Source: Macrostomum hystrix (Eukaryota > Animalia > Platyhelminthes). From it: a DNA stretch of 64,000 nt. The translations under genes were made by a program, and so were the position numbers. Location: positions 6,262,001 to 6,326,000 of the forward strand of contig CATNEN010000002.1 of the NCBI GenBank assembly GCA_950097015.1. Reading direction: 5' to 3'. Within the stretch, counting starts at the first letter, position 1, and each line of letters begins with the position of its first letter. This document shows, in pieces, positions 3,693 to 63,373 of this stretch. The notes beneath the pieces were generated by a model. It was not told the DNA's origin and did no database searches. It worked only from the letters and a program-made list of their open reading frames with translations.

Positions 3693-6600
3693 ATGGCCAG
3701 GCCTCCGCTGCTGCTGCTGCTGCTTCTCATCCTGACTGCCGTCAGCTTTGGTAAGTATTGCACCTGTGCTCACTGCCCTCACATGCACCTGTGCTCACTG
3801 TCCTCACATGCACCTGTGCTCACTGTCCTCACATGCACCTGTGCTCACTGCCCTCACATGCACCTGTGCTCACTGCCCTCACATGCACCTGTGCTCACTG
3901 CCCTCACATGCACCTGTGCTCACTGTCCTCACATGCACCTGTGCTCACTGCCCTCACATGCACCTGTGCTCACTGTCCTCACATGCACCTGTGCTCACTG
4001 TCCTCACATGCACCTGTGCTCACTGCCCTCACATGCACCTGTGCTCACTGCCCTCACATGCACCTGTGCTCACTGCCCTCACATGCACCTGTGCTCACTG
4101 TCCTCACATGCACCTGTGCTCACTGTCCTCACATGCACCTGTGCTCACTGTCCTCACATGCACCTGTGCTCACTGTCCTCACATGCACCTGTGCTCACTG
4201 TCCTCACATGCACCTGTGCTCACTGTCCTCACATGCACCTGTGCTCACTGCCCTCACATGCACCTGTGCTCACTGCCCTCACATGCTCTGCTGATTGCAG
4301 ACAGCTTTCAGGCAATCAACTGTTTTATTCGGAGCGGGACATCAACAACAGACAATGGGACGACTCAATCCTGTGGGTCAGCCACTGGGTGCTACTCAGT
4401 CACAACCAATGGGGTAAGATTGAATTGCCTGCTGATTTGTTTTTTGTTTTCTGTTTTCCCTTGAAGTTACCTTTTCATAGCGCCCGCCATCAATGGCTCA
4501 TCATTCCAGCAAAGATTCGCGGGCTGCACCAGCAATGGCCAGTGCGGCAGTTCAGGGCCGGACTGCTACGTGTGCAGCACGGACTACTGCAACAGCGTGA
4601 CCCCCTCCTCCATCAGCTGCTTCTACCGCTCAGGATATTCCAGCAGCACCTACAATGGCACTGTGGTCGCCTGCCACTCCGGGGTCTCAGCCTGTAACTC
4701 CTACATGGGATCGGTGAGTTGAGCTGAAAGCTAAACTAAATTAGCTCTTGAAAAGGTGTGCGCGTTTCTGCAGTGCAGTTCACTTTTTTAAGAACTTTTC
4801 TTTAAATGTAACGTGTCGATGGCAATAGTTTAAATTCCCTTTTTTCTACATCTCAATATAAAGAATGTTTTTTTCATTGCGAGCAAAGTCTTTGTTTGTC
4901 AGCTGGTTTGACTGCTAATGCTGCTGTGCACTTCAAGCGGGAGTTGATTTTGAGCTGACAGTCAATGACTTGCTGAACTCGCTCCTCGGGACCTTACTGA
5001 AGGATTGATTGAACAGCTGGGAGCGGCTGGCGAAGCGGAGGTGGTGGGTGAGGAATGAGCCCAGCGCTCAAGGTGAAGAATGGGATGTGGGAATTTCGGT
5101 ATTTACAGCGCTTTTAAAATCAAGACTACAATCAGGACTGCAGTCTGAGTTTTATCTTTTTACAAGGTTAGTTGTCTGTGCCATTGGCAGAACTGGCATT
5201 AAAAATGGAACTTTCTTGACAGTAGATCGATCCGTGCCTTTGACATTGTAGGGATCATCTGGCAGCGTCAGCTATGCCGGCTGTGGCAACATCAGCACCA
5301 ATGACTTTGTTCAGCTGTTCACCTGCAACTCCAGCTTGTGCAACTCCCGAACACCGTCAGCCATCAGCTGCTATGTGGCATCAAGATCTCCTGGTTCCAC
5401 CAACAACGGATCTGCGGTGCCCTGTCCTACTGGAATAAAGACATGCCTTGTCTATGACATCAACGTCTTTTATTCGGTAATTCTCCCACCGGGGTGATTT
5501 AATTCTACAACATGGCTTCTAGCATTTAGAATAAGAAAAAAGTAAGCAAGACACCACATAAGCCTGGAAGTGGCAAGAAGAATGAGCATGGCAGAGGCAA
5601 GAAGATTGAGCATGGCAGAGGCAAGAAGAATGAGCATGGCAGAGGCAAGAAGATTGAGCATGGCAGAGGCAAGAAGAATGAGCATGGCAGAGGCAAGAAG
5701 AATGAGCATGGCAGAAGCAAGAGGAATGAGCATGGCAGAGGCAAGAAGAATGAGCATAGCAGAGGCAAGAAGAATGAGCATAGCAGAGGCAAGAAGAATG
5801 AGCATGGCAGAGGCAAGAAGAATGAGCATGGCAGAGGCAAGAAGAATGAGCATGGCAGAGGCAAGAAGAATGAGCATGGCAGAGGCAAGAAGAATGAGCA
5901 TGGCAGAGGCAAGAAGAATGAGCATGGCAGAGGCAAGAAGAATGAGCATGGCAGAGGCAAGAAGAATGAGCATGGCAGAGGCAAGAAGAATGAGCATGGC
6001 AGAGGCAAGAAGAATGAGCATGGCAGAGGCAAGAAGAATGAGCATGGCAGAGGCAAGAAGAATGAGCATGGCAGAGGCAAGAAGAATGAGCATGGCAGAG
6101 GCAAGAAGAATGAGCATGGCAGAGGCAAGAAGAATGAGCATGGCAGAGGCAAGAAGAATGAGCATGGCAGAGGCAAGAAGAATGAGCATGGCAGAGGCAA
6201 GAAGAATGAGCATGGCAGAGGCAAGAAGAATGAGCATGGCAGAGGCAAGAAGAATGAGCATGGAAGAGGCAAGAAGAATGAGCATGGCAGAGGCAAGAAG
6301 AATGAGCATGGAAGAGGCAAGAAGAATGAACATGGAAGAGGCAAGAAGAATGAACATGGAAGAGGCAAGAAGAATGAGCATGGCAGAGGCAAGAAGAATG
6401 AACATGGAAGAGGCAAGAAGAATGAGTATGGCAGAGGCAAGAAGAATGAGCATGGCAGAGGCAAGAAGAATGAGCATGGCAGAGGCAAGAAGAATGAGCA
6501 TGGCAGAGGCAAGAAGAATGAGCATGGCAGAGGCAAGAAGAATGAGCATGGCAGAGGCAAGAAGAATGAGCATGGCTTCGAGTTAAGAAATAAATTCTGC

Positions 6601-9600
6601 TTTGGGTAGCTATTCGGGTTCAACTGGGAATCATGAAAACCGAATGAAAAAGGAATGACACAGCACCTGAGATCAGTGGCAGAACTCGGTGTGACAGAGC
6701 TCAGATAAAAACAAAATGCAAAGCAAAAGAGTCGTCGATTGCCCCACCCTGTACTTCAGGGTGGCTCCATCTGGTATTCTGCTGGCTGCGGCTCCTGCAA
6801 CTCCACCGCAAATCCATCATGCGTGACCTGCAGCTCTGACCTGTGCAACTCAGCGACTCCTGCAGCCATCAGCTGCTATAGAAGATCACTATATAGTATG
6901 GATGCGATCAGCTATGGACAGCCCGAAACTTGTCAGCCAGGAATTAGCACCTGCTATTCGTTTGTTGCTACCTATAGTGTAAGTTCCTATTATGAATGAG
7001 CTTTTCTGCCTACAGATTCTACATATGAAAAGTCTGTATTAATACTACTCAATATTAGCTCATTTTCATTGTCAATACATTGACAATTTCAGGGTTCTTC
7101 GTACTACTACGGAGGTTGCGGAACCTGCAGCCCAGACACGATTCCGTCATGTCAGACATGCACCAGTAACTACTGCAACACCATGGATACAGGAACTCTT
7201 ACCTGCGCTACAAGAAGCAGCTATAACAAAAACCCTGTCTCCTGTGCCAGAGGAATAAACAGCTGCTACTCACTCACCAAACCCCTTGTGAGCTGCAGCT
7301 TTTACCTGTTGTGAATATCAGCCAGTGTGCTCCCACTGTGATCTGCTCTTGAACTCAGCCTCCAATATCGATCATTCCAGAGAGTGGTGCAGACGTACAG
7401 TTTCAGCAACCTCCTCAGTGGCTGCGGTGTCTGTACGGCGACAACAAGCGCCCTCTACGGCTGCACAATGTGCAACACCAGCAACTGCAACTCCGTGGCC
7501 CCAGTAACAACTGGCAGCCCAGCCAATCCGAGCGGAAACCCGACCAACTCGCCAAGCACAGGTACCGCAGCAGGTGGCTTCAGCTGCTACAATGGCTTCG
7601 GTGAGACTGGCGTCAGCAGCCCACAGACTGTCAGCTGTCCGTCATCGAGCACCTGCTTCGACTACATCATTAGCTACGGAGTGAAGAATGTGAGGCTGAA
7701 AACATTATTTGTTAGAAAAAACTGAAGCTTTGGGGGGCTATTAAACAATCAGTTTGAACTCACGAATGAATAACACGACCCACCAAACTAATATTAGTTT
7801 AACGAATCAGCTGTTTCAGTTGCTTTAATTGTACATTGAAATGAATTAAATAAGCCTGCTTAATCACATTCCCTGCATCCTCTCACCTGCAGTTCTTCTT
7901 CTCAGGCTGCTCAATCACATCAGCTCCACCCTCTCACCTGCAGTTCTACTTCTCAGGCTGCTCAATCACATCAGCTCCATCCTCTCACCTGCAGTTCTCC
8001 TTCTCAGCCTGCTCAATCACATCAGCTCCATCCTCTCACCTGCAGTTCTCCTTCTCAGGCTGCTCAATCACATCAGCTCCACCCTCTCACCTGCAGTTCT
8101 CCTTCTCAGGCTGCTCAATCACATCAGCTCCACCCTCTCACCTGCAGTTCTACTTCTCAGGCTGCTCAATCACATCAGCTCCATCCTCTCACCTGCAGTT
8201 CTCCTTCTCAGCCTGCTCAATCACATCAGCTCCATCCTCTCGCCTGCAGTTCTCCTTCTCAGCCTGCTCAATCACATCAGCTCCATCCTCTCACCTGCAG
8301 TTCTCCTTCTCAGCCTGCTCAATCACATCAGCTCCATCCTCTCACCTGCAGTTCTCCTTCTCAGCCTGCTCAATCACATCAGCTCCACCCTCTCACCTGC
8401 AGTTCTACTTCTCAGGCTGCTCAATCACATCAGCTCCATCCTCTCACCTGCAGTTCTCCTTCTCAGGCTGCTCAATCACATCAGCTCCATCCTCTCACCT
8501 GCAGTTCTACTTCTCAGGCTGCTCAATCACATCAGCTCCACCCTCTCACCTGCAGTTCTCCTTCTCAGCCTGCTCAATCACATCCGCTCCATCCTCTCAC
8601 CTGCAGTTCTACTTCTCAGGCTGCTCAATCACATCAGCTCCACCCTCTCACCTGCAGTTCTCCTTCTCAGCCTGCTCAATCACATCCGCTCCATCCTCTC
8701 ACCTGCAGTTCTACTTCTCAGCCTGCTCAATCACATCCGCTCCATCCTCTCACCTGCAGTTCTACTTCTCAGGCTGCTCAATCACATCAGCTCCATCCTC
8801 TCACCTGCAGTTCTCCTTCTCAGCCTGCTCAATCACATCAGCTCCATCCTCTCACCTGCAGTTCTCCTTCTCAGGCTGCTCAATCACATCAGCTCCACCC
8901 TCTCACCTGCAGTTCTACTTCTCAGGCTGCTCAATCACATCAGCTCCATCCTCTCACCTGCAGTTCTACTTCTCAGCCTGCTCAATCACATCAGCTCCAT
9001 CCTCTCACCTGCAGTTCTACTTCTCAGGCTGCTCAATCACATCAGCTCCATCCTCTCACCTGCAGTTCTACTTCTCAGGCTGCTCAATCACATCAGCTCC
9101 ACCCTCTCACCTGCAGTTCTCCTTCTCAGCCTGCTCAATCACATCAGCTCCACCCTCTCACCTGCAGTTCTACTTCTCAGGCTGCTCAATCACATCAGCT
9201 CCACCCTCTCACCTGCAGTTCTACTTCTCAGGCTGCTCAATCACATCAGCTCCACCCTCTCACCTGCAGTTCTACTTCTCAGGCTGCTCAATCACATCAG
9301 CTCCACCCTCTCACCTGCAGTTCTCCTTCTCAGCCTGCTCAATCACATCAGCTCCACCCTCTCACCTGCAGTTCTACTTCTCAGGCTGCTCAATCACATC
9401 AGCTCCATCCTCTCACCTGCAGTTCTACTTCTCAGCCTGCTCAATCACATTAGCTCCATCCTCTCACCTGCAGTTCTACTTCTCAGGCTGTGGCAGCTGT
9501 CCCTTCAGCAGCGGCACCGACTGTCGCACCTGCAGCTCGAGCTTGTGCAACTCACCTCGGAGAAAGTCCGGCACGAGATGCTACTTCAGCTTCGGCGACA

Positions 9601-9934
9601 GTGCGCAGAGCAAATCCGTGGTCGACTGTCCGTCATCCAGCAGCTGCTTCAGCTACACCTACAATTACGGACTGGCCAAGGTGAGTTCTTGTGCTCAGCC
9701 TCATTCTGCTGTGAGTTCACATGAGTTTGAGCATTGCTGGTGATCTGCGAACCCGCGCGTTTTCAGTTCTTCTTTGCCGGCTGCGGCAACTGCACTTTCG
9801 ACAGCGGCACGACGAACTGCCGCACCTGCTTCACCGACCTCTGCAACTCGGGCTCCGCACTGGGCTGCTCCGCTGCTGCTGCTGCTGCTGCCGCTGCTGT
9901 GGTCTTTGGACTGAACCTCATGAAGCTCTTCTGA
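3693..9934 (+). CDS. Gene A1: secreted/GPI-anchored protein with 7 Cys-rich three-finger (Ly6/uPAR- or DUF753-like) domains, ~565 aa, 9 exons
   Basis: Hand-spliced join(3693-3750,4301-4413,4510-4713,5252-5476,6760-6978,7093-7287,7381-7689,9474-9680,9767-9934). All introns are GT-AG; intron 1 is phase 1 and introns 2-8 are phase 0; 1698 nt with no stop. It begins with the signal peptide MARPPLLLLLLLILTAVSF. The repeated motif is C-[YF]-x(n)-C-x(5-6)-C-[YFL]...GC..C...C..C....CN, with many NxS/T sequons. The C-terminus CNSGSALGCSAAAAAAAAVVFGLNLMKLF resembles a GPI signal. The family assignment is from Cys-pattern recognition, not a database search. Confidence 0.85.
3760..4286. repeat. Intron-1 25-bp minisatellite (CACCTGTGCTCACTGYCCTCACATG)n; copies 17509-18356, 36719-37066, 58297-58572
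   Basis: About 21, 34, 14 and 11 units in A1-A4; fills almost the whole intron. Confidence 0.97.
5571..6576. repeat. Intron-4 24-bp purine-rich minisatellite (GCAAGAAGAATGAGCATGGCAGAG)n; copies 38350-38633, 60357-62253
   Basis: About 42, 12 and 79 units in A1, A3 and A4; A2 has only a partial unit (gaagaatgagcatgg, ~19706-19720). Confidence 0.97.
7855..9488 (+). repeat. Intron-7 51-bp minisatellite spanning the exon-8 splice acceptor; copies 20994-21812, 39666-39895, 63505-64000
   Basis: Unit CTCTCACCTGCAG|TTCTACTTCTCAGGCTGCTCAATCACATCAGCTCCATC. The distance from first to last acceptor is 1581 (31x51) in A1, 765 (15x51) in A2 and 204 (4x51) in A3. Confidence 0.97.
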
Positions 9935-10863: not shown

Positions 10864-11215
10864 GGCACTGAGGTACTCCACTGCTGCTGCTGCTGCTGCT
10901 ACTGTGGTCTTTGGGCTGAACCTCATGAAGCTGTTCTGAAGCTCCAATTTATGTTTAACTGTGAGCTCACTGGGTACGTGTCTTCTTGGCTGCTCACAGG
11001 TCTCACCTTCATGATTGCTCTCAACCCAGTTGCGTGTGTCTGACGTCACACTTGAAATTAAACAGAATCGTTTAAAATTTTTCGTTCCTTACTTTGATGT
11101 ACCAAGTAATTTTACATCGATAGAATATTATTGCTGCATCCAATCCAGTATTTATTTTTTTGCTGTTAAATCCTGTTCCTGTTCCAATGACATGAACGCA
11201 TCAAACAACTCTGAT
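10864..11215 (+). pseudogene. Orphan relic of a paralogous last exon plus 3' UTR (copies at ~23191-23545 and ~45924-46275)
   Basis: gcactgag..ctccactgctgctgct..actgtggtctttgggctgaacctcatgaagctgttctga encodes ...AAAAAATVVFGLNLMKLF*, matching the A exon 9 end. The downstream sequence aligns patchily with the A 3' flank (gtgtctga.gtcacactt, ccagtatttatt). Confidence 0.7.
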
Positions 11216-13149: not shown

Positions 13150-15290
13150 CTGCAGTGCTGCAGTGGGGTGGTCCATGCCAAGGTGTCATCCTGGCTCACA
13201 GGTGCTACAGTGGGGTGGTCTATGCCAAGGTGTCACCCTGGCTCACAGGTGCTGCAGTGGGGTGGTCTATGCCAAGGTGTCATCCTGGCTCACAGGTGCT
13301 GCAGTGGGGTGGTCCATGCCAAGGTGTCATCCTGGCTCACAGGTGCTACAGTGGGGTGGTCTATGCCAAGGTGTCACCCTGGCTCACAGGTGCTGCAGTG
13401 GGGTGGTCTATGCCAAGGTGTCATCCTGGCTCACAGGTGCTGCAGTGGGGTGGTCCATGCCAAGGTGTCATCCTGGCTCACAGGTGCTACAGTGGGGTGG
13501 TCTATGCCAAGGTGTCACCCTGGCTCACAGGTGCTGCAGTGGGGTGGTCTATGCCAAGGTGTCATCCTGGCTCACAGGTGCTGCAGTGGGTAGTCCATGC
13601 CAAGGTGTCACCCTGGCTCACAGGTGCTACAGTGGGGTGGTTATGCCAAGGTTTCATCCTGGCTCACAGGTGCTGCAATGGGGTGGTCCATGCCAAGGTG
13701 TCATCCTGGCTCACAGGTGCTACAGTGGGGTGGTCCATGCCAAGGTGTCATCCTGGCTCACAGGTGCTACAGTGGGGTGGTCCATGCCAAGGTTTCATCC
13801 TGGCTCACAGGTGCTGCAGTGGGGTGGTCCATGCCAAGGTGTCACCCTGGCTCACAGGTGCTGCAGTGGGGTGGTCCATGCCAAGGTGTCATGCTGGCTC
13901 ACAGGTGCTGCAGTGGGGTGGTCCATGCCAAGGTGTCATCCTGGCTCACAGGTGCTGCAGTGGGGTGGTCCATGCCAAGGTGTCATCCTGGCTCACAGGT
14001 GCTGCAGTGGGGTGGTCTATGCCAAGGTGTCATCCTGGCTCACAGGTGCTGCAGTGGGTAGTCCATGCCAAGGTGTCACCCTGGCTCACAGGTGCTGCAG
14101 TGGGGTGGTCCATGACAAGGTTTCATCCTGGCTCACAGGTGCTGCAGTGGGGTGGTCCATGCCAAGGTGTCACCCTGGCTCACAGGTGCTGCAGTGGGGT
14201 GGTCCATGCCAAGGTGTCATGCTGGCTCACAGGTGCTGCAATGGGGTGGTCCATGCCAAGGTGTCATCCTGGCTCACAGGTGCTACAGTGGGGTGGTCCA
14301 TGCCAAGGTGTCATCCTGGCTCACAGGTGCTACAGTGGGGTGGTCCATGCCAAGGTTTCATCCTGGCTCACAGGTGCTGCAGTGGGGTGGTCCATGCCAA
14401 GGTGTCACCCTGGCTCACAGGTGCTGCAGTGGGGTGGTCCATGCCAAGGTGTCATGCTGGCTCACAGGTGCTGCAGTGGGGTGGTCCATGCCAAGGTGTC
14501 ATCCTGGCTCACAGGTGCTGCAGTGGGGTGGTCCATGCCAAGGTGTCATCCTGGCTCACAGGTGCTGCAGTGGGGTGGTCTATGCCAAGGTGTCATCCTG
14601 GCTCACAGGTGCTGCAGTGGGTAGTCCATGCCAAGGTGTCACCCTGGCTCACAGGTGCTGCAGTGGGGTGGTCCATGACAAGGTTTCATCCTGGCTCACA
14701 GGTGCTGCAGTGGGGTGGTCCATGCCAAGGTGTCATCCTGGCTCACAGGTGCTACAGTGGGGTGGTCCATGCCAAGGTGTCATGCTGGCTCACAGGTGCT
14801 ACAGTGGGGTGGTCCATGCCAAGGTTTCATCCTGGCTCACAGGTGCTGCAGTGGGGTGGTCCATGCCAAGGTGTCACCCTGGCTCACAGGTGCTGCAGTG
14901 GGGTGGTCCATGCCAAGGTGTCATGCTGGCTCACAGGTGCTGCAGTGGGGTGGTCCATGCCAAGGTTTCATCCTGGCTCACAGGTGCTGCAGTGGGGTGG
15001 TCCATGCCAAGGTGTCATCCTGGCTCACAGGTGCTACAGTGGGGTGGTCCATGCCAAGGTGTCATGCTGGCTCACAGGTGCTACAATGGGGTGGTCCATG
15101 CCAAGGTGTCATCCTGGCTCACAGGTGCTGCAGAGGGGTGGTCCATGCCAAGGTGTCATCCTGGCTCACAGGTGCTGCAGTGGGGTGGTCCATGCCAAGG
15201 TGTCATCCTGGCTCACAGGTGCTGCAGTGGGGTGGTCCATGCCAAGGTGTCATCCTGGCTCACAGGTGCTGCAGTGGGGTGGTCCATGCC
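13150..15290. repeat. 47-bp minisatellite (TGGGGTGGTCCATGCCAAGGTGTCATCCTGGCTCACAGGTGCTGCAG)n; copies 26606-27128, 53788-54922
   Basis: About 45, 11 and 24 units. Confidence 0.97.
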
Positions 15291-16135
15291 GAGGCAGTCA
15301 ATACTGTTCGCTTCAATTCAGCCCCATGTCCACGGCTGAAGAGGCTGAATTATATTCAATTTCGCTAAGCATTCGCCACAGAGTTTTTAGCTCAGTTGCC
15401 TTGACACTACTTTAAGCGGTGCAGCGTAAATATGCACGGAAAAAAATAATAAACCAATCTAAAAAGTGAGGTAAATAGAACATATTTCACTTAAGACATC
15501 CCTTTAAGTCCCTTAAAGTTGTCAGTTAGTTGGCAAAGTGTCTGAAACACTCGCTGAAGGCCAGTGCTGGTTGTTTATGTCATCAACAGGTGCTGTTTTA
15601 ATATTTTGAAATAAAAATGCAAAAAGCACGATGTTGGCCTTATTACGAGGATAAAAAGCGAAATCAAAGTTATAGGGGAATGAGAAAGCGAGGAAAAAAA
15701 CGATTACACAAAAATATACTTAATTTGCATTTTAGGTCGCGCCTACAGTACATACTCGAACTGCAACACTGGTCTGAGGATTCAGTTGCAGTCTCTCTGT
15801 GTCATCTCTATTTTAAAACTCGCAGGTGTTTCTGCTGCGTCTCTATTGTCTTGCACCATTAAGCCCTCAAGTGTGACATTCAAAAGTAGCTTTTCTATTT
15901 TTATCCTTGCCTTGCGTCTCTAAAATGCCTAAAAATCTAAAATTGAAAGTTATCAATGTTGGCCAAGTTTCCTTTGAACATTCGCTGCAAGGACCACTAT
16001 AGTAGTCAGTAGTCTACTTTAGTCCTTGATTCGCTATAAGCCAGTGCAGGTTGTTTAGCTTATCATTATTAGCGTTAATGTCTCTCTCTGAGCATACTCA
16101 CTGTGAGATTGTCAAGCCAAGGACCACAATATTAC

Positions 16136-25330: not shown

Positions 25331-25352
25331 GTGTTCACTGTTCCCTTTGAGT

Positions 25353-30577: not shown

Positions 30578-30589
30578 ACCTCTGCCTGC

Positions 30590-44523: not shown

Positions 44524-45488
44524 AGCTCCCGACCTTCAGCGTCGGTTGGGCCGACCAAGCCGCTTGTCTGGTTTCTCATTTTGCTGAACTTGAAGCCAGG
44601 CCGCGAATAGGTCGAACTGCCAGCAGGATTGGGTTTAGGTGCCAGAATGTGCTTGGACAGCAGCTGCAACGACTCCCGCTCCCAGCTGCCGCTGGTCTGG
44701 TGCTGCAGGATCCTGAAGTCTTCGTCGTAGTCGTTGAGGGCGGCCTGGCTGAAGCCCTGATGCATGAACTCGCCGAACTGTACGCAGTACCGCACATAGG
44801 CTTTCAGCTCACTCAAATCCATGGTGCCGTTTCTCATTGTGACTAGGGCACCGTCGTCAAGCAGTCTCAGCAGGATGCGGCCGCTGCCTGCAACCCACTG
44901 ACCGGCCGTGATGTTCTCAGTTCGGGCTCTAGTCTTCGCTAATTGGGGCGCAGGCTCCTCGAAGTCACGATCGATGAAGTCTCTCACCAGCAGAGGCCTC
45001 GAGGTGGCAGCTGGCTTAGTGTAGCTGCCGGGGAGTTCCCAGTCTGGCACTGGCAGATGCTGCTCCGGCTCGTGGGCACTGAGGGTTTGGTTAAGCAGCA
45101 TCGGGCTAGTCGACTTACCACTCTGTCTGCGCTGGCCGTCCTTTCCAAGCTCGGCTTCAATCTCCGCTGTTTGGCGCTGAAGCGTTCTCAGGCGGAGCAG
45201 CTTCTCTTGTCTGGCGATCCTCTGGTCCAGGTCGTCGCCGCCTCCCAGATCACTCGCCTGGTCCGGGTTCGCCTCGCCGTCCTCTTCGCTGCAGGTGCTG
45301 CCGTCGTCCTCGACTTGGGCCGAAGCGGTTGACCTTTGCTGCACGCGGCGTGTGGTTCGGCTGACTAAACTGGATTGTTCCAGTCTGACTTGCAGTTCAC
45401 GCTTGCGACCGCTGCTAGGCAGGCCAAGTTGAATCAGGCGGTCTCTTAACTGGCGAGCCGTAAGCCGGTCAATTGGAAGCTCAGCCAT
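44412..45488 (-). CDS. Ngaro gag-like ORF1 with N-terminal SAP-like motif and C-terminal Cys/His finger
   Basis: ATG at 45488 (MAELPIDRLTARQLRDRLIQLGLPSSGRKRELQVRLE). C-terminal CVKFNRNSCHRRDCKFRHACSAC..AHPRQLC. Confidence 0.8.
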   Translation of the reverse strand: MAELPIDRLTARQLRDRLIQLGLPSSGRKRELQVRLEQSSLVSRTTRRVQQRSTASAQVEDDGSTCSEEDGEANPDQASDLGGGDDLDQRIARQEKLLRLRTLQRQTAEIEAELGKDGQRRQSGKSTSPMLLNQTLSAHEPEQHLPVPDWELPGSYTKPAATSRPLLVRDFIDRDFEEPAPQLAKTRARTENITAGQWVAGSGRILLRLLDDGALVTMRNGTMDLSELKAYVRYCVQFGEFMHQGFSQAALNDYDEDFRILQHQTSGSWERESLQLLSKHILAPKPNPAGSSTYSRPGFKFSKMRNQTSGLVGPTDAEGRELCVKFNRNSCHRRDCKFRHACSACYAAHPRQLCTSKN

Positions 45489-50800: not shown

Positions 50801-51524
50801 TGACAGTTACAGTGACAGTGACAGTGACAGTGACAGTGAACAGTGACAGTGACAGTGACAGTGACAGTGACAGTGACAGTGACAGTGACAGAGACAGTGA
50901 ACAGTGACAGTGACAGTGACAGTGACAGTGACAGTTACAGTGACAGTGACAGTGACAGTGACAGTGAACAGTGACAGTGACAGTGACAGTGACAGTGACA
51001 GTGACAGTGACAGTGACAGAGACAGTGAACAGTGACAGTGACAGTGACAGTGACAGTGACAGTTACAGTGACAGTGACAGTGACAGTGACAGTGACAGTG
51101 AACAGTGACAGTGACAGTGACAGTGACAGTGACAGTGAGAGAGACAGTGAACAGTGACAGTGACAGTGACAGTGACAGAGACAGTGACAGTGACAGTGAC
51201 AGTGACAGTGACAGTGACAGTGACAGTGACAGTGACAGTGACAGTGAACAGTGACAGTGACAGTGACAGTGACAGTGACAGTGACAGTGACAGTGACAGT
51301 GACAGTGACAGTGACAGTGACAGTGACAGTGACAGTGACAGTGACAGTGACAGAGACAGTGAACAGTGACAGTGACAGTGACAGTGACAGAGACAGTGAC
51401 AGTGACAGTGACAGTGACAGTGACAGTGACAGTGACAGTGACAGTGACAGTGACAGTGACAGTGACAGTGACAGTGACAGTGACAGTGACAGTGACAGTG
51501 ACAGTGACAGTGACACTGACAGTG
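47820..51524. repeat. (ACAGTG)n array expanded to ~3.7 kb with higher-order repeats, unit 3
   Basis: Same flanks as in U1 and U2; variant units ACAGAG, ACAGTT and AACAGTG recur periodically. Confidence 0.98.
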
Positions 51525-53119
51525 AGGTCAGTGCAGATGAAGGAAAACAAATCAGCACGTAAAATGATTAACAAAGGTATGAGGGTTGTGACATAAATTC
51601 GCTGACACTGCAGATATCAAATAAACAAAACAAAGAACAGCTAATTGTCAAGATTGCACTTCTCAACATAGTCACCCCCAAGCTGCACACATTTGTGCCA
51701 TCTCTCTGGCAGCTTGCTGATGCCCTGGGCGAAGAATTCGGTGGGGGTCCCTCGAACCCACTGGCTGATGGCCGAGCTGAGTGCAGAAAGGCTTCCATAG
51801 CGATGGCCACGAAGAGGCTCTTTCATTTTAGGGAACAACCAGTAGTCACTGGGGGCCAGGTCAGGAGAATGGTCAATGGTGGCTGCGCAAAACTGCTCTA
51901 GCTGACTAAACCTAATGGCTCCGAAACCTGCGAGCTTCCTTAAAAATGAAACCCGATATCCACACACTTTACTAGTCTCTATTGCATGGGTGTTCACTGT
52001 TCCCTTTGAGTTTATGTGAAACCCAGATACTTAGTGCTGAGCTCATCGGATCTATGGATGAGAATAACATAGGACAGAGGGGCAGCCAATTGTCTCACCC
52101 CCGATAGAAATGCAATGCCCCTCTGTGGCGAACCCCTCTGAAACTGCAATTTGGCTCCAGAGTACATGCCCTTGTACATGCCCTTGTACATGCCCTTGTA
52201 CATGACCCTGATCATTTCGGGGGTCACACCAAGCCCATTAAGCCGTTCAAATAGTGTGGTGTGATCCACCATGTCAAAAGCACTTTTAAGATCGAAGAAG
52301 ACCAGATAAAAGGGTTTCTTAAGCACTTTTTGCTGTGGATGAGGTGGCTGTGTGATCCCAGCAGTAGATATTGGAGAGTTCGGTACCCGATTCACATTGT
52401 CGTGTTATTTTGAGTAACTCTGAGAATCACTCAGCAGCTTCTGAAAGGAAACTCAGATATTTGAGACTCTAGGAGCATTGCGTGCAAGGCATAAGAATAA
52501 GAATTTTGCCGTGCAGGTGAGCCAAGTTTAACGCTAAAACTTCTCATACAAAAAATTCATTTGCTTTAGTCTCCACTTGAGCACTAACAAGATTGAATCG
52601 CATGAAATTTCTGACAGCTTGTCACCCTTAAAAAGTTCGAAAAGCTACAAAAGTACCCCTCTTTACAAAAGTAAATAAGCCGTCTTAGGAATCCAAAAAC
52701 TGTTTATTCAGCTGTTTTGTGAGCTCACACCCTCGACCTCTGTCTTCTCGAGTTCATCGGCTCTTCTGTCGAAGGTTCTTTCCACACTGGCGAAGTCTAA
52801 TTCTTAACCAAGTCACTCCCTCACTAGTATTGCACAATGTATCCTATGCGATTTTATGGTAAGGCACAAAGAGCATTGTGAAGCCCAGATGCATTCCGCA
52901 AATATTATTTTATTTAAGAAAGACCGCTTCTTCTAGCTCGTATTAATTGCTCCTAAATCAAAATGACAGTTCGTGACGAGCTAATTCAAAAGGAAATTAA
53001 ATGCTCCCGAAAGAGCAATACTCGTAAATAGCCTGCAACGCACCTCTTCATACTCAAAGGCAACTGCCGAATTCTGAGCACAATTTTCGTTCCAGCTGCT
53101 CAACTTTGTCTGCCTCTGT

Positions 53120-53788
53120 ATGGCCTGCTCTCCGTTGCTGCTGCTTCTCATCGTCGCTGCTGTCAGCTTAGGTATCATGGTTCACCTGTGCTCACTGCTC
53201 ATATCCTCCTCACGAGTGTAGGTCAGTTCAATGCGACCGGAATGCTCATTTCAGACTGCAGCCAAGCCATCATCTGCTTCTCCCGCAATGGAACCTCCCT
53301 CATTGACAATGGGACGGCTGTGCCTTGTGTGCCTTGTGCCGATGGGGAAACTGCAGTGCTCTGTGTGCAATATTTGTAACCGCATGAGTTCTGTTGCAAC
53401 GACAAAAGCTCCGTAGTAATCACTGAAGCTCTGCTGTAAGTTCAGACGCCAGGTAGCAATCGATTCAAAGCCATTTTTACTTAGGTTTGCCATAATAATA
53501 CTTCGCTGCCATTTTCAGTTTCACTATGCGGGCTGTACCAATAATAGCCAATGTCTGACAGCAGGTGCTCGTTGCTACCTGTGCGCCACTGACTACTGCA
53601 ACTCCATGACGCCTCCATCCATCAGCTTTTAAAAAATATTTTTATGGTCTGAAGTAACCATGGTCAAGAATAGGATTCTTAGGCAGTCTTCCACGTGCGT
53701 ATGGCATTTAGTGAACTGACAAAACGGCTACAATTCAAAACACAGGCTTCTGCTGACTGCGGCCCGTGCAACGCTACGGCGAATCCTT
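53120..53788 (+). pseudogene. Paralog B2: copy of B1 in unit 3
   Basis: Signal exon 53120-53171; exon-2 homolog from 53255 with stop at 53379; exon-3 homolog 53519-53632 with stop; exon-5-like start at 53746 (ASADCGPCNATANP) fused to the 47-bp array. Confidence 0.65.
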
Positions 53789-55900
53789 GGTCCATGCCAA
53801 GGTGTCACCCTGGCTCACAGGTGCTACAATGGGGTGGTCCATGCCAAGGTGTCATCCTGGCTCACAGGTGCTGCAATGGGGTGGTCCATGCCAAGGTGTC
53901 ATCCTGGCTCACAGGTGCTGCAATGGGGTGGTCCATGCCAAGGTGTCATCCTGGCTCACAGGTGCTGCAGTGGGTAGTCCATGCCAAGGTGTCATCCTGG
54001 CTCACAGGTGCTGCAGTGGGGTGGTCCATGCCAAGGTGTCATCCTGGCTCACAGGTGCTGCAATGGGGTGGTCCATGCCAAGGTGTCATCCAGGCTCACA
54101 GGTGCTGCAGTGGGGTAGTCCATGCCAAGGTGTCATCCTGGCTCACAGGTGCTGCAGTGGGGTAGTCCATGCCAAGGTGTCATCCTGGCTCACAGGTGCT
54201 GCAATGGGGTGGTCCATGCCAAGGTGTCATCCAGGCTCACAGGTGCTGCAGTGGGGTGGTCCATGCCAAGGTGTCATCCTGGCTCACAGGTGCTGCAGTG
54301 GGGTGGTCCATGCCAAGGTGTCATGCTGGCTCACAGGTGCTACAGTGGGGTGGTCCATGCCAAGGTGTCATGCTGGCTCACAGGTGCTGCAGTGGGTAGT
54401 CCATGCCAAGGTTTCATCCTGGCTCACAGGTGCTGCAGTGGGGTGGTCCATGCCAAGGTGTCATCCTGGCTCACAGGTGCTGCAGTGGGTAGTCCATGCC
54501 AAGGTGTCACCCTGGCTCACAGGTGCTGCAGTGGGGTAGTCCATGCCAAGGTGTCATCCTGGCTCACAGGTGCTGCAGTAGGGTAGTCCATGCCAAGGTG
54601 TCATGCTGGCTCACAGGTGCTGCAGTGGGGTAGTCCATGCCAAGGTGTCATCCTGGCTCACAGGTGCTGCAGTGGGTAGTCCATGCCAAGGTGTCACCCT
54701 GGCTCACAGGTGCTGCAGTGGGGTGGTCCATGCCAAGGTGTCATCCTGGCTCACAGGTGCTACAATGGGGTGGTCCATGCCAAGGTGTCATCCTGGCTCA
54801 CAGGTGCTGCAGAGGGGTGGTCCATGCCAAGGTGTCATCCTGGCTCACAGGTGCTGCAGTGGGGTGGTCCATGCCAAGGTGTCATCCTGGCTCACAGGTG
54901 CTACAGTGGGGTGGTCCATGCCGAGGCAGTCAATACTGTTCGCTTCAATTCAGCCCCATGTCCACGGCTGAAGAGGCTGAATTATATTCAATTTCGCTAA
55001 GCATTCGCCACAGAGTTTTTAGCTCAGTTGCCTTGACACTACTTTAAGCGGTGCAGCGTAAATATGCACGGAAAAAAATAATAAACCAATCTAAAAAGTG
55101 AGGTAAATAGAACATATTTCACTAAAGACATCCCTTTAAGTCCCTTAAAGTTGTCAGTTAGTTGGCAAAGTGTCTGAAACACTCGCTGAAGGCCAGTGCT
55201 GGTTGTTTATGTCATCAACAGGTGCTGTTTTAATATTTTGAAATAAAAATGCAAAAAGCACGATGTTGGCCTTATTACGAGGATAAAAAGCGAAATCAAA
55301 GTTATTGGAGAATGAGAAAGCGAGGAAAATAACGATTACACAAAAATATACTTAATTTGCATTTTAGGTCGCGCCTACAGTGCATACTCGAACTGCAACA
55401 CTGGTCTGAGGATTCAGTTGCAGTCTCTCTGTGTCATCTCTATTTTAAAACTCGCAGGTGTTTCTGCTGCGTCTCTATTGTCTTGCACCATTAAGCCCTC
55501 AAGTGTAAGACATTCAAAAGTAGCTTTTCTATTTTTATCCTTGCCTTGCGTCTCTAAAATGCCTAAAAATCTAAAATTGAAAGTTATCAAAGTTGGCCAA
55601 GTTTCCTTTGAACATTCGCTGCAAGGACCACTATAGTAGTCAGTAGTCTACTTTAGTCCTTGATTCGCTACAAGCCAGTGCAGGTTGTTTAGCTTATCAT
55701 TATTAGCGTTAATGTCTCTCTCTGAGCATACTCACTGTGAGATTGTCAAGCCAAGGACCACTATACTACAACCACTGGGTCATGATTCCATGAAGCACAG
55801 CAAGCTAGAAACGACATGCTATTGAAACTTTCTGGAAAACAGTCGAGCCCTGCCAAGCCGATTGCAAGCGACTATCCTCTTGCCGCGAACTTTTAACTGT

Positions 55901-58229: not shown

Positions 58230-61200
58230 ATGGCCAGGCCTCCTCTGCTGCTGCTGCTGCTTCTCATCCTGACTGCCGTCAGCTTTGGTTAGTGCTGCAC
58301 CTGTGCTCACTGCCCTCACATGCACCTGTGCTCACTGCCCTCACATGCACCTGTGCTCACTGCCCTCACATGCACCTGTGCTCACTGCCCTCACATGCAC
58401 CTGTGCTCACTGTCCTCACATGCACCTGTGCTCACTGTCCTCACATGCACCTGTGCTCACTGTCCTCACATGCACCTGTGCTCACTGCCCTCACATGCAC
58501 CTGTGCTCACTGCCCTCACATGCACCTGTGCTCACTGTCCTCACATGCACCTGTGCTCACTGCCCTCACATGCTTTGATGATTGCAGACAGCTGTCAGGC
58601 AATCAACTGTTTTACTCGGAGCGGGACATCAACAACAGACAATGGGACGACTCTGGCATGTGGGTCAGCTACAGCGTGCTTCTCAAGCACATACAATGGG
58701 GTAAGTCTGAAGTTTCTCCTGATTTGTTTTCGACAAATTGTTTTGAAGTGGACCTTGAAGTGAAAGTATCTTTGAATTATTGCGAGTCTCATATTTAACG
58801 CAGAGGAAGTTAAAAAGAAGAAAAAACAATTTCATTGATGCATGGCTACCTAAGCCTCAGGGCAGCTGTCCTTGAGAATAGATATCTCTGAAATACTTTC
58901 CTTGGGCTTCCGTGGTATCCCACTTGTGTCACCAAGCAGTCTATTTTATCTTATGCAGTTTGAAACGCAAAACTAACAGTTTTTCTGAGATTTTTTTGCT
59001 ATTTAAAGGGGCAGTGCTATACCTGTTCCAACTGCACTTTGATAAAAAGTGGACCTCGTTTTCAACTTCTATTTGGCACCTGCTGTAAAATATTTTCTCA
59101 TAGAAATTCTCGGTCTCACATTTCACAATGTTTCACAAGCTCATGTTTTCCTGGTCCAAAAGAGGAAAGAGTGTCTCAACTCAGGCTTGCAGATTTCTTG
59201 CTCATATTTTTCGGCTGAAAAAATATCATTAAAATGATAATATAAGTAGTTATAATAGAAATAGCCAAATGAGCGCATGACTCATCATTCCAGCTAAGAT
59301 TTGCGGGCTGCACCAGCAATGGCCAGTGCGGCAGTTCAGGCCCGGACTGCTACGTGTGCAGCACGGACTACTGCAACAGCGTGACCCCCTCCTCCATCAG
59401 CTGCTTCTACCGCTCAGGATCTTCCAGCAGCACCGACAATGGAACTGTGGTCGCCTGCCACTCCGGGGTCTCAGCCTGTTACTTCTACATGGGATGGGTG
59501 AGTTGAGCTGAGAAGCTAAACTAAATTAGCTCTTGAAAAGGTGTGCGCGTTTCTGCAGTGCAGTTCACTTTTTGAACTTTTTAAAACTTTTATTTAAATG
59601 CAACGTGTCGATAATATTATTTTAAATTAACTTTTTTCTACATCTCAATATAAAGAATGTTTTTTTCATTGGGAGCAAAGTCCTTGTTTGTCAGCTGATT
59701 TAATTGCTAATGCTGCTGTGTACTTCAAGCGAGTGTCGATTTTGAGCTGACAGTCAATGACTTGCTGAACTCGCTCCTCGGGACCTTACTGAAGGATTAA
59801 TTGAACAGCTGGGAGCGGCTGGCGAAGCGGAGGTGGTGGGTGAGGAATGAGCCCAGCGCTCAAGGTGAAGAATGGGATGTGGGAATTTCGGTATTTACAG
59901 CGCTTTTGAAACCAAGACTACAATCAGGACTGCAGTCTTAGTTTTATCTTTTTACAAGGTTAGTTGTCTCTGCCATTGGCAGAACTGGCATTAAAAATAG
60001 AAATTTCTTGACAGTAGATCGACCCGTGCCTTTGACATTGTAGGGATCAACTGGCAGCTATGCCGGCTGTGGCAACATCATCACCTATGAGAAAGTTCAG
60101 CTGTTCACCTGCAACTCCAGCCTGTGCAACTCCCGAACACCGTCAGCCATCAGCTGCTATGTGGCATCAAGATCTCTTGGTTCCACCAACAACGGATCTG
60201 CAGTGCCCTGTCCTACTGGAATAAAGACATGCCATGTCTTCAGTGACACCTACCCCTTCTCTACGGTAATTCTCCCGCCGGGGTGATCTAAATCTACAAC
60301 ATGGCTTCTATCATTTAGAATAAGAAAAAAGTAAGCAAGACACCACATAAGCCTGGAAGAGGCAAGAAGAATGAGCATAGCAGAGGCAAGAAGAATGAGC
60401 ATGGCAGAGGCAAGAAGAATGAGCATGGCAGAGGCAAGAAGAGTGAGCATAGCAGAGGCAAGAAGAATGAGCATAGCAGGGACAAGAAGAATGAGCATGG
60501 CAGGGACAAGAAGAATGAGCATGGCAGAGGCAAGAAGAATGAGCATAGCAGAGGCAAGAAGAATGAGCATGGCAGAGGCAAGAAGAATGAGCATAGCAGA
60601 GGCAAGAAGAATGAGCATAGCAGAGGCAAGAAGAATGAGCATGGCAGAGGCAAGAAGAATGAGCATAGCAGAGGCAAGAAGAATGAGCATAGCAGGGACA
60701 AGAAGAATGAGCATGGCAGGGACAAGAAGAATGAGCATGGCAGAGGCAAGAAGAATGAGCATAGCAGAGGCAAGAAGAATGAGCATAGCAGAGGCAAGAA
60801 GAATGAGCATAGCAGAGGCAAGAAGAATGAGCATAGCAGAGGCAAGAAGAATGAGCATGGCAGAGGCAAGAAGAATGAGCATAGCAGAGGCAAGAAGAAT
60901 GAGCATAGCAGGGACAAGAAGAATGAGCATGGCAGGGACAAGAAGAATGAGCATGGCAGAGGCAAGAAGAATGAGCATAGCAGAGGCAAGAAGAATGAGC
61001 ATAGCAGAGGCAAGAAGAATGAGCATAGCAGAGGCAAGAAGAATGAGCATAGCAGAGGCAAGAAGAATGAGCATGGCAGAGGCAAGAAGAATGAGCATAG
61101 CAGAGGCAAGAAGAATGAGCATAGCAGAGGCAAGAAGAATGAGCATAGCAGAGGCAAGAAGAATGAGCATGGCAGAGGCAAGAAGAATGAGCATAGCAGA

Positions 61201-63373
61201 GGCAAGAAGAATGAGCATAGCAGAGGCAAGAAGAATGAGCATAGCAGAGGCAAGAAGAATGAGCATGGCAGGGACAAGAAGAATGAGCATAGCAGAGGCA
61301 AGAAGAATGAGCATGGCAGAGGCAAGAAGAATGAGCATAGCAGAGGCAAGAAGAATGAGCATAGCAGAGGCAAGAAGAATGAGCATGGCAGAGGCAAGAA
61401 GAATGAGCATAGCAGAGGCAAGAAGAATGAGCATAGCAGGGACAAGAAGAATGAGCATGGCAGGGACAAGAAGAATGAGCATGGCAGAGGCAAGAAGAAT
61501 GAGCATGGCAGGGACAAGAAGAATGAGCATGGCAGGGACAAGAAGAATGAGCATGGCAGGGACAAGAAGAATGAGCATAGCAGAGGCAAGAAGAATGAGC
61601 ATGGCAGAGGCAAGAAGAATGAGCATAGCAGAGGCAAGAAGAATGAGCATAGCAGAGGCAAGAAGAATGAGCATGGCAGGGACAAGAAGAATGAGCATGG
61701 CAGGGACAAGAAGAATGAGCATGGCAGAGGCAAGAAGAATGAGCATAGCAGAGGCAAGAAGAATGAGCATAGCAGAGGCAAGAAGAATGAGCATGGCAGG
61801 GACAAGAAGAATGAGCATGGCAGGGACAAGAAGAATGAGCATGGCAGAGGCAAGAAGAATGAGCATGGCAGGGACAAGAAGAATGAGCATGGAAGAGGCA
61901 AGAAGAATGAGCATGGCAGGGACAAGAAGAATGAGCATGGAAGAGGCAAGAAGAATGAGCATGGCAGAGGCAAGAAGAATGAGCATGGCAGAGGCAAGAA
62001 GAATGAGCATGGCAGAGGCAAGAAGAATGAGCATGGCAGAGGCAAGAAGAATGAGCATGGAAGAGGCAAGAAGAATGAGCATGGCAGAGGCAAGAAGAAT
62101 GAGCATGGCAGAGGCAAGAAGATTGAGCATGGCAGAGGCAAGAAGAATGAGCATGGCAGAGGCAAGAAGATTGAGCATGGCAGAGGCAAGAAGAATGAGC
62201 ATGGCAGAGGCAAGAAGAATGAGCATGGCAGAGGCAAGAAGAATGAGCATGGCTTCGAGTTAAGAAATAAATTCTGCTGTGGGTAACTAATCGGGTTCAA
62301 CTGGGAATCATGAAAACCGAATGAAAAAGGAATGGAACAGCACCTGAGATCAGTGGCAGAACTCGGTGTGACAGAGCTCAGATAAAACCAAAATGCAAAG
62401 CAAATGAGCCGTGGATTGCCCCACTCTTCTTCAGTTCGGCTCCGGCTACTATTCTGCTGGCTGCGGCTCCTGCAACTCCACCGCGAATCCAACATGCGTG
62501 ACCTGCAGCTCTGACCTGTGCAACTCAGCGACTCCTTCAGCCATCAGCTGCTATAGAAGAATACTAAATTTTTGGAGTGCGACCAACAATGGACAGACCG
62601 AAACTTGTCAGCATGGAATTAGCACCTGCTACTCGTTTGTTGCCTCCTATGGTGTAAGTTCCTATTATGAATGAGCTTTTCTGCCTACAGATTCTAAATA
62701 TGAAAAATCTGTATTAATACTACTCAATATTAGCTCATTTTCATTGTCAATACATTGACAATTTCAGGGTTGGTACAACTACTTCGGCGGTTGCGGCGCC
62801 TGCAGCCCAGACACGATTCCGTCATGTCAGACATGCACCGGTGACTACTGCAACACCATGGATACAGGAACTCTCACCTGCGCTACAAGTACAAACGGCA
62901 GCAGTATGAGCAATAACCCTGTCTCCTGTCTCAGGGGATTAAACAGCTGCTACTCACTCACCAAACCCATTGTGAGCTGCAGCTTTTACCTGTTGTCAAT
63001 ATCAGCCAGTGTGCTCCCACTGTGATCTGCTCTTGAACTCAGCCTCCAATATCGATCATTCCAGATAGTGGTGCAGGCGTACAGTTTCAGCAACCTCCTC
63101 GGTGGCTGCGGTGTCTGCACGCCGACAACAAGCGCCCTCTACGGCTGCACAATGTGCAACACCAGCAACTGCAACTCCAGGGCCCCAGCAACAACTGGCA
63201 GCGCAGCCAATCCGAGCGGAAACCCGACCAACTCGCCAAGCACAGGTACCGCAGCAGGTGGCTTCAGCTGCTACTACAGCTTCGGCCAGACTGACTTAAC
63301 CAGCACGCAGAACGTCAGCTGTCCGTCATCGAGCAGCTGCTTCGAGTACAGCTTCAGCTACGGAGTGAAGAAT
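58230..63373 (+). CDS. Gene A4: paralog of A1, exons 1-7 (exons 8-9 lie beyond the window end)
   Basis: join(58230-58287,58588-58700,59294-59497,60044-60265,62435-62653,62768-62971,63065-63373). Intron 1 donor is GTTAGT; frame is open; followed by the intron-7 51-bp array running off the window. Confidence 0.8.
58880..59230 (-). mobile_element. Possible degenerate LINE 3' fragment inside A4 intron 2
   Basis: A4-specific intron sequence. The minus strand reads RCQIEVENEVHFLSKC, like the C-terminal C..E.E.HF...C motif of LINE ORF2. Confidence 0.35.

Follow-up and report, generated by a model that had tools for sequence, protein, structure and literature searches.

How can neighbouring copies of a gene keep a cysteine framework almost unchanged and yet carry loops that differ radically from copy to copy? 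This question is raised by a 64,000-nucleotide stretch of the genome of the flatworm Macrostomum hystrix (contig CATNEN010000002.1, positions 6,262,001 to 6,326,000; here called the window), the + strand of which carries four tandem paralogous genes, designated A1 to A4, for proteins built from cysteine-rich domains. An earlier examination of the letters alone, referred to below as the sequence-only reading, had described them as a tandem family of seven-domain three-finger surface proteins with antibody-like hypervariable loops. The analysis presented here makes it probable that the four paralogues belong to a surface family of the Macrostomum lineage whose fingers have been diversified by selection for binding specificities.

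Gene models were built by scanning for phase-0 exons between AG and GT and by aligning the copies with one another. The peptide motifs of the sequence-only reading were located in four places, and its quoted strings, from the E3/E4, E4/E5, E5/E6 and E6/E7 exon junctions and from the first loops of domains D4 and D5, were all found to be exact. Its span of 3693-63373 runs from the ATG of A1 to the end of exon 7 of A4. The three complete models, A1 to A3, have nine exons each and seven domains of the cysteine framework could be counted in every one, as had been proposed; exons 8 and 9 of A4 lie beyond the end of the window, the edge of which is crossed by the minisatellite in its intron 7 (coordinates of all features are collected in Table 1). 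In all four copies the intron that follows the signal-peptide exon is in phase 1 and every subsequent intron is in phase 0. The introns fall in the middle of domains and none lies between them, each internal exon completing one domain and encoding half of its successor, an offset of half a domain. Every length difference between the copies is a multiple of three, which bears out the statement that indels keep the frame. The tandem duplication unit measures ~14-21 kb, and the window as a whole is eukaryotic and repeat-rich, with a G+C content of ~49%.

The encoded proteins comprise a hydrophobic signal peptide, which is the product of exon 1 (MARPPLLLLLLLILTAVSF), domains D1 to D5, a hinge rich in Pro, Thr and Ser, domains D6 and D7, and a hydrophobic tail of the glycosylphosphatidylinositol (GPI) type. 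The domains follow the framework C-x(15-18)-C-x6-C-x(~20)-GC-x2-C-x7-C-x2-C-x4-CN with eight invariant cysteines each, while D2 has six (one pair fewer), and there are 8-9 N-glycosylation sequons per protein. The last 20 residues have a mean Kyte-Doolittle value of 1.79, with no cytoplasmic part, and the C-terminal end of a homologue from Macrostomum lignano is similar to the A1 tail. The products are probably secreted, glycosylated and GPI-anchored, anchorage and surface location being what we infer from these features. An extra ninth cysteine was seen at the start of D1 in A2, A3 and A4 (D-S/N-C-Q-A-I-x-C; exons starting at 18380, 37085 and 58588), where A1 has Phe, with TTT for TGT (exon 2, 4301-4320); an unpaired cysteine in three of the four copies could lead to dimerisation.

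Transcripts of the family were sought in public sequencing runs by a word search with the stretch 6650-7800, which was recovered from DNA-type runs of one organism; wastewater metatranscriptomes and the RNA-type runs of two further organisms contained smaller shares of it. Contigs of four RNA-type runs were aligned to 6600-7850, so that the RNA evidence covers exons E5-E7 and carries no information on expression level or tissue; the boundaries of exons 1-4 rest on the splice consensus and on matching exon boundaries in M. lignano. Spliced RNA contigs were found to exist. They lay on E5, E6 and E7, with zero or near-zero depth in introns 5 and 6 and beyond 7689, and their joints 6975>7103 and 7288>7407 are the predicted E5/E6 and E6/E7 junctions. 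Both joints enclose letters that differ from those of A1, the length being the same as in A1 or off by exactly three. Read in frame, loop II of D5 was GWLLSNID or GWLMSDVD in the RNA and RVVQTYSFS, GWLTTYSY, RRIPNGFVD and IVVQAYSFS in the copies of the window, the RNA variants of this finger being one codon shorter, and contigs with other in-frame letters were also found for finger II of D4. In three of the four RNA runs the donor at 7689 was joined to TTCTACTTCTCAGGCTGTGGCAGCTG, the start of E8 (FYFSGCGSC); this confirmed the donor and identified the last 51-bp unit of the intron-7 minisatellite as the acceptor in use. One wastewater contig inside intron 4 (6614-6706) is unspliced RNA or DNA in that run. 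Two side observations concern the same runs. A 77-nt joint that goes back, 7584>7508, occurred within the Pro/Thr/Ser hinge in contigs of three runs, and other copies or alleles therefore have a longer, internally duplicated hinge. The wastewater metatranscriptomes (runs X10, X12, X13 and X17) contained spliced family transcripts, some contigs being at least 99% like the window, which suggests that a closely related flatworm inhabits those treatment systems or their vicinity.

The fold was modelled with AlphaFold2 on one domain of the M. lignano homologue (P0024:162-240), using an alignment of 45 complete family domains. The model, with a predicted local distance difference test score (pLDDT) of 78.9, has strands at residues 8-16, 28-31, 39-45, 53-59 and 71-73, which form three hairpins, two of them long and the third short. 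When it was compared with the PDB by Foldseek, the best 50 matches were all three-finger proteins (template modelling score by target up to 0.81), among them Lynx1, erabutoxins, mambalgin, GPIHBP1, SLURP-2 and CD177; VIA-align, run against 48,161 chains, placed nothing but three-finger, Ly6/uPAR or TGF-beta-receptor ectodomains in its first 38 positions (Z 7.6-3.9, residues 6-79). The three-finger fold anticipated by the sequence-only reading is well supported for this homologue domain.

Membership in the curated Ly6/uPAR (LU) families, on the other hand, is not supported at the level of sequence. A domain profile compared with PDB sequences gave short-chain snake neurotoxins as its best matches, with the whole domain aligned, at E = 0.016-0.06. 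Full-length homologues (n = 10) had no Pfam match at E <= 0.1, and single exons gave nothing useful in Pfam because each exon holds two half domains. Searched domain by domain, Toxin_cobra-type was the most frequent model, in 4 of 45 domains with a best E of 0.0029, below the cut-off, and neither UPAR_LY6, Toxin_TOLIP nor a related Pfam model scored above its gathering score. LU domains have the motifs CCxxxxCN at the C terminus and LxCxxC at the N terminus (PMC4839075). In the array the adjacent cysteines of the former are split (C-x2-C-x4-CN, C-x4-CN being kept), the latter is absent, and the N terminus has a single cysteine (I-S-C-Y/F). By sequence, the cysteine number, eight per domain and six in D2, agrees with the LU count of 8-10 in LU spacing; D1 and D3 of uPAR have 7 and 8 cysteines (PMC4839075). 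A tumour necrosis factor receptor (TNFR) cysteine-rich domain, the automatic UniProt name of the M. lignano homologues, was considered and rejected: there was no Pfam TNFR match, and no TNFR among the listed structural matches.

The signal peptide, D1, D6 and D7 and the tail are nearly identical in the four copies, D6-D7 and the last exons being 98-100% identical, and the sharp differences lie in patches. When loops defined beforehand from the cysteine positions alone were mapped on the model, 76% of the alignment columns of finger II in D2-D5 were found to vary, 45% of those of finger I, 26% of those of finger III, and 17% of those of the core and other positions; the clustering of variable sites at finger tips that had been expected was thus borne out, above all for fingers II and I against the core. 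The variable patches flank splice junctions because the intron that splits each domain sits at the tip of finger II. The description of the hypervariable loops as centred on splice junctions is hence correct as to position, whereas the link need not be mechanistic. Alignments across the junctions showed conserved intron ends beside densely substituted exon ends, with in-frame insertions of 3-18 nt just inside the exon. Most loop segments align as dense point changes and small indels, a few (e.g. loop II of D5 in A3) being hardly alignable. Tyr and Trp make up 20.5% of finger II of D2-D5 against 5.5% of the non-Cys scaffold (p = 1e-10). The aromatic part of the proposed Tyr/Trp/Ser/Gly enrichment therefore stands; the full set, at 46% against 39% (p = 0.056), does not. 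Likewise, the likeness to antibodies holds for variable loops on a fixed frame and is otherwise analogy only: somatic diversification produces the diversity of antibodies and variable lymphocyte receptors, while the variation observed here lies between four germline paralogues, with a few RNA variants from other samples, and neither allelic nor somatic hypervariability was seen among them.

Selection was assessed from Nei-Gojobori proportions of synonymous (pS) and non-synonymous (pN) differences, pooled over the six gene pairs, and from the ratio omega estimated by maximum likelihood under the GY94 model, with a likelihood ratio test (LRT) against omega = 1. The scaffold gave pS 0.085, pN 0.042 and omega 0.51. 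The loops of D2-D5 taken together gave pS 0.137, pN 0.215 and omega 2.1, significantly above 1 (twice the log-likelihood difference 11.7, p = 6e-4), so that the loop dN/dS lies above the background as had been predicted. By finger, D2-D5 yielded pS 0.066 and pN 0.190 for loop I, pS 0.029 and pN 0.095 for loop III, and pS 0.284 and pN 0.306 for loop II; the combined omega of loops I and III was 4.2-5.4 (LRT p = 3e-4). The loops of D1, D6 and D7 gave pS 0.146, pN 0.110 and omega 0.85. The statement that the framework is near-identical even at silent sites was found to apply to some segments (pS = 0 at loop III of D4 and D5), while the scaffold overall, at pS 0.085, stands at about the intron level.

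A neutral baseline was obtained from BLAST-aligned, repeat-masked introns and from pairwise whole-intron alignments; a first comparison of introns and exon tips in fixed windows aligned by MAFFT was dropped, its values having been inflated by misaligned indels and by neighbouring exons inside short introns. Introns differ by 4.2-6.9% between paralogues, against a loop II pN of 0.19-0.36 per site for the same gene pairs. Relative to intron divergence, pN was 3.4-4.4 times as high for all D2-D5 loops and 4.6-6.6 times as high for loop II (Fisher p 2e-8 to 5e-18). In the comparison of A1 with A4, 2 of the 114 nt of intron 5 are changed, whereas the 27-nt exon tips on its two sides have 4 and 7 changes (11 of 54); at finger II of D2 the acceptor side has 12 differences in 27 nt and intron 3 has 28 in 538. 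Intron 5 of A2 differs from that of A3 at 3 of 119 positions.

The favoured reading supposes that tandem duplication of the unit was followed by selection for different binding specificities, which would have filled the finger codons with dense point substitutions and small in-frame indels while purifying selection held the cysteine scaffold and the introns drifted by 4-7% only; exchange between paralogues would have reshuffled gene halves. The surface of contact with a ligand would be formed by the exposed fingers of D2-D5, mainly finger II, joined by the first finger in D4 and D5 and the third in D2. The nearly invariant D6-D7, close to the membrane, would act as a stalk that the Pro/Thr/Ser hinge sets apart from D1-D5. 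That ligands are bound through the fingers we infer from the pattern of variation, and as to the biological setting, interaction with a mate or gamete seems about as likely as recognition of microbes or non-self, with other roles possible. Of the claim of a diversifying recognition family, the structural and evolutionary parts are thus upheld, whereas the function then suggested (immunity, allorecognition, gamete or prey interaction) is a reasonable conjecture.

Several points weigh against this reading. Loop II taken alone, with an omega of 1.45, was not significantly above 1 (LRT p = 0.18), because its synonymous sites have also strongly diverged (pS 0.28), a rise for which ambiguous codon homology after indels, multiple hits, older loop lineages or local mutation bias are possible causes. 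The codon model assumes a single tree, which recombination between copies violates, and the tests rest on four paralogues and are made at the level of partitions rather than of sites. Finger II of the invariant D6 and D7 is aromatic-rich as well, and the aromatic composition may reflect the preferences of a beta-hairpin rather than a binding surface. The fold comes from an M. lignano homologue, the whole protein being ~46% identical, and not from a protein of the window; when D2-D5 of P0024 were modelled together by AlphaFold2 from an alignment of six sequences, the pLDDT was 34, too low for a statement on packing. Finally, GPI anchorage was judged from hydrophobicity alone.

The main rival is concerted evolution, in which the loop lineages are old, gene conversion homogenises introns and scaffold, and selection for diversity stops conversion tracts from erasing the loops. 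The paralogues have clearly exchanged sequence, because the intron pairings differ between the halves of the genes: intron 2 is 96 nt long in both A1 and A3, which are 97% identical there, against 261 nt in A2 and 593 nt in A4, while the partner of A1 in introns 5-6 is A4 (98-99%), and that of A2 in intron 5 is A3. Such mosaic relationships are as this account would have them, and so are the near-identity of D6-D7 and the last exons and a loop II whose synonymous sites are as diverged as its non-synonymous ones, far above the scaffold. An RNA contig from another organism, moreover, reads YDSYFPFS, like the D3 loop FSDTYPFST of A4. Conversion tracts would, however, have to skip no fewer than eight patches of ~20-40 nt, each with its edge exactly at a splice site, and the loops of the copies can still be recognised as related through dense point changes. 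This account also still needs selection for loop diversity and alters its timing rather than its nature. Although four sequences cannot separate it from the favoured reading, we regard concerted evolution as an unlikely explanation of the pattern.

Could a mutational process local to exon ends, such as replication slippage in low-complexity Ser, Gly and Tyr codons or damage associated with transcription, with splicing or with the intronic minisatellites, have produced the loops with no selection for diversity? Synonymous and non-synonymous differences are both raised in loop II, some insertions resemble local duplications (e.g. the ATGGGAT repeat at the end of exon 3 of A2), and large minisatellites occupy introns 1, 4 and 7. 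A mutational hot spot should nevertheless ignore the splice site, and divergence drops to 2-10% in the first intron bases beside hypervariable codons. Fingers I and III, which lie in mid-exon, combine the highest omega with low pS (0.03-0.07), the equivalent junctions of D1, D6 and D7 are conserved, and every indel is in frame. A mutational origin is thus very improbable. Relaxed constraint, with unimportant finger tips left to drift, would be consistent with the length changes and the many residues that the loops tolerate. Drift cannot, however, outrun the neutral rate, and because loop pN exceeds intron divergence, 3.4-6.6 times over and with omega significantly above 1, drift under relaxed constraint is excluded as the cause; the frames and the aromatic composition have also been kept, and we give this explanation scarcely any weight. 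That the genes are decaying duplicates or artefacts of modelling, as the repeats, the two transposon insertions and the truncated B-type relatives of the region might suggest, is barely credible given three full and one partial intact open reading frame (ORF), canonical splice sites, spliced RNA contigs and an exon structure kept in M. lignano.

How far does the family extend? A profile from 17 internal exons was used to search 1.84 billion representative proteins at E <= 0.001 and retrieved 23 proteins, which makes the family a small one; those with a named source come only from Macrostomum lignano or from root-knot nematodes of the genus Meloidogyne, with no schistosome or vertebrate protein among them. 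In their sources they are called "hypothetical" or carry automatic names such as "TNFR-Cys domain-containing". The best match, P0024 of M. lignano (600 aa), has the identical seven-domain layout and ~46% identity to A1-A3, and the M. lignano gene for P0034 has exon boundaries at matching mid-domain positions. The pattern of the window recurs independently in M. lignano, where P0024 and P0034, two paralogues with 84% identity, differ in the D3-D5 loops and have identical D6-D7; a homologue search from P0024 returned two M. lignano proteins only. The M. lignano relatives (P0025 was looked up) lie on one contig ~420 kb apart and not in tandem. A protein-atlas feature search gave only leads below 0.9, namely a nematode cluster (the nearest, at 0.88), DUF753, cobra cytotoxin and TGF-beta receptor II. 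As an observation in its own right, the Meloidogyne relatives (P0006, P0008, P0010, P0012, P0013, P0015-P0018 and P0020) are multi-domain proteins with up to 8 matched stretches and the sole ones outside Macrostomum at E <= 0.001, an odd and patchy spread across two unrelated phyla.

Among known systems the closest in layout are the multi-domain GPI-anchored Ly6/uPAR proteins. In Ly6/uPAR genes exon 1 encodes the signal peptide, two exons the mature domain and the last exon the anchor signal (PMC4839075), a layout that the array genes share according to the models, the spliced RNA contigs for E5-E7 and the M. lignano boundaries; common to both are tandem three-finger domains, a signal-peptide exon of its own, two-exon domains and a putative GPI signal in the last exon. 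The model of the M. lignano domain aligns structurally with domains of CD177, C4.4A, TEX101 and uPAR (Z 5.5-6.5). In contrast to these proteins, the array has seven domains, an exon offset of half a domain, C-x2-C-x4-CN, no N-terminal LxCxxC, no Pfam match at thresholds, a Pro/Thr/Ser hinge after D5, and fingers that are hypervariable between tandem paralogues. Three LU domains occur in uPAR/PLAUR, two in C4.4A/LYPD3, and two in human and four in mouse CD177, the listed mammalian members having one to four (PMC4839075); no description of seven LU domains on one chain was found in the literature searched.

In pattern the array resembles the snake three-finger toxin genes, for which introns and signal peptide are conserved, exon segments that encode loops are radically different, and repeats occur in introns, as described under the terms ASSET and RAVER (PMC2474615, PMC2711939, PMC3847720). 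The fold is shared, short neurotoxins are the best sequence and structure matches of the family domain, and an intron divergence of 0.042-0.069 against a loop II pN of 0.19-0.36 parallels the ASSET contrast (PMC2474615). The toxins are, however, single-domain secreted venom proteins, whereas the flatworm genes encode seven domains with a probable membrane anchor; and while ASSET replaces segments by unrelated ones, the array loops look like dense point changes and small in-frame indels, a few being hardly alignable. Plethodontid modulating factor (PMF) is a hypervariable three-finger family with a conserved framework under sexual selection (PMC4029566, PMC8904931). Its rank among the structural matches is low (Z 3.0), and it differs in being a small secreted pheromone of altered disulfide topology.

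The Ly6/uPAR fertilisation factors Bouncer/SPACA4 and the schistosome tegument protein SmLy6 have one LU domain, and Sm29, also of the tegument, has two. Bouncer is a Ly6-type protein of species-specific gamete recognition (bioRxiv 10.1101/354688), and SmLy6 shows that proteins of this type occur at the surface of flatworms (PMC4492491). For flatworms, 61 LU proteins were counted in a 2026 survey of invertebrates (PMC13719153); we assume that it relied on domain annotation and hence would miss the family, as Pfam is blind to it at thresholds and Pfam-type surveys would therefore probably miss it. A literature search combining Macrostomum with three-finger, Ly6, GPI and positive selection, and using Mlig gene numbers, found no paper on the family, in agreement with the earlier statement that it appears uncharacterised; the agreement extends to the literature searched.

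Table 1. Positions of the genes, variable fingers and other elements in the window
Feature	Position	Strand	Remarks
Gene A1	3693-9934	+	9 exons, 565 aa, ORF intact, all sites GT-AG
A1 exons	3693-3750, 4301-4413, 4510-4713, 5252-5476, 6760-6978, 7093-7287, 7381-7689, 9474-9680, 9767-9934	+	
Gene A2	17442-22258	+	9 exons, 575 aa, ORF intact, all sites GT-AG
A2 exons	17442-17499, 18380-18492, 18754-18972, 19390-19614, 19901-20137, 20257-20451, 20530-20835, 21798-22004, 22091-22258	+	
Gene A3	36652-40341	+	9 exons, 555 aa, ORF intact, all sites GT-AG
A3 exons	36652-36709, 37085-37197, 37294-37497, 38031-38255, 38696-38911, 39031-39222, 39313-39597, 39881-40087, 40174-40341	+	
Gene A4	58230-63373, then past window end	+	exons 1-7 in window, at least 443 aa open, GT-AG sites
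A4 exons 1-7	58230-58287, 58588-58700, 59294-59497, 60044-60265, 62435-62653, 62768-62971, 63065-63373	+	
A1 D2 finger II	4702-5275	+	variable codons 4702-4713 and 5252-5275, flanking intron 3
D2 finger II equivalents	A2 18949-19413, A3 37486-38054, A4 59486-60061	+	
A1 D3 finger II	5453-6780	+	variable codons 5453-5476 and 6760-6780, flanking intron 4; pN 0.37
D3 finger II equivalents	A2 19591-19921, A3 38232-38713, A4 60239-62455	+	
A1 D4 finger II	6961-7110	+	variable codons 6961-6978 and 7093-7110, flanking intron 5
D4 finger II equivalents	A2 20102-20271, A3 38894-39045, A4 62636-62785	+	
A1 D5 finger II	7273-7416	+	variable codons mostly 7381-7416, after intron 6
D5 finger II equivalents	A2 20437-20562, A3 39208-39348, A4 62957-63100	+	
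A1 D4 finger I	6883-6924	+	pN/pS 10.3
A1 D5 finger I	7213-7236	+	pN/pS 1.9
A1 D2 finger III	5291-5317	+	pN/pS 6.6
A1 Pro/Thr/Ser hinge, D5/D6	7495-7578 (approximate)	+	length varies; A3 hinge 8 residues shorter
A1 C-terminal small-residue stretch and tail	9852-9934 (approximate)	+	NSGSALGCS, A9, VVFGLNLMKLF; candidate GPI attachment signal
Intron-7 51-bp minisatellite	7856-9490, 20993-21814, 39666-39897, 63503-64000		amplified intron 7/exon 8 junction
B-type truncated relative	25846-26600	+	signal-peptide-like exon, D1 halves, stop right after ...TPPSISF, E5-like fragment into 47-bp minisatellite
Second B-type copy	~53030-53790		98% identical to the first
100-nt copies of last-exon end and start of 3' flank	10865-10964, 23194-23293, 45927-46026		84% identical
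Other minisatellites	1-1368, 1762-2718, 3759-4286, 5561-6576, 13155-15294, 47820-51525 and others		units 21, 25, 25, 24, 47 bp; plus 3.7 kb (ACAGTG)n
Retroelement	28853-34291	+	G+C ~61%
Retroelement	41696-45656	-	G+C ~61%

The surroundings of the genes are rich in other elements. Two truncated B-type relatives may be pseudogenes or encode a short secreted one-domain form. Each unit of the 51-bp minisatellite in intron 7 reads in frame as FYFSGCSITSAPSSHLQ and has an AG acceptor, and in three of the four RNA runs it is to the last unit only that exon 7 is joined. Each complete A gene is followed, ~1 kb downstream (5.6 kb for A3), by a 100-nt copy of the stretch where the last exon passes into the 3' flank. 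Minisatellites are unusually dense and recur at matching relative places in each duplication unit with very different copy numbers, the 24-bp array of intron 4 having 42, 0, 12 and 79 copies in A1-A4. Two retroelements lie between the genes, one of them a non-LTR (long terminal repeat) element with an intact 1238-aa ORF that contains endonuclease, reverse transcriptase and RNase H, the other DIRS-like, encoding a reverse transcriptase and a tyrosine recombinase of the phage-integrase family.

A more far-reaching proposal could be envisaged, tentative and rather doubtful at present, in which the array is part of a polymorphic germline repertoire of seven-domain receptors that present four hypervariable domains as a combined surface for the recognition of non-self, pathogens, mates or sperm, new variants arising by recombination in minisatellite-rich introns that reassorts the halves of finger II. 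If true, invertebrates would have a new kind of recognition-receptor system, built on the Ly6 fold.

What we rate as new under the favoured reading of paralogues diversified by selection is a multi-domain, probably membrane-tethered form of a known fast-evolving three-finger scaffold. This scaffold is a classic basis of fast-evolving binders such as snake toxins, salamander pheromones and fertilisation factors, the known chains having one domain, or at most four in human and mouse; in a free-living flatworm it is found as seven domains on a probable lipid anchor, with the fingers of four of them diversified. Conserved introns beside variable exon tips offer a clean new case of tandem paralogues that diversify while exchanging sequence. 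Because Macrostomum serves as a laboratory model of sexual conflict, regeneration and transgenesis, the family is accessible to in situ hybridisation, RNA interference and binding tests. Receptors for mates or non-self being poorly known in this phylum, it supplies a specific candidate for such a role.

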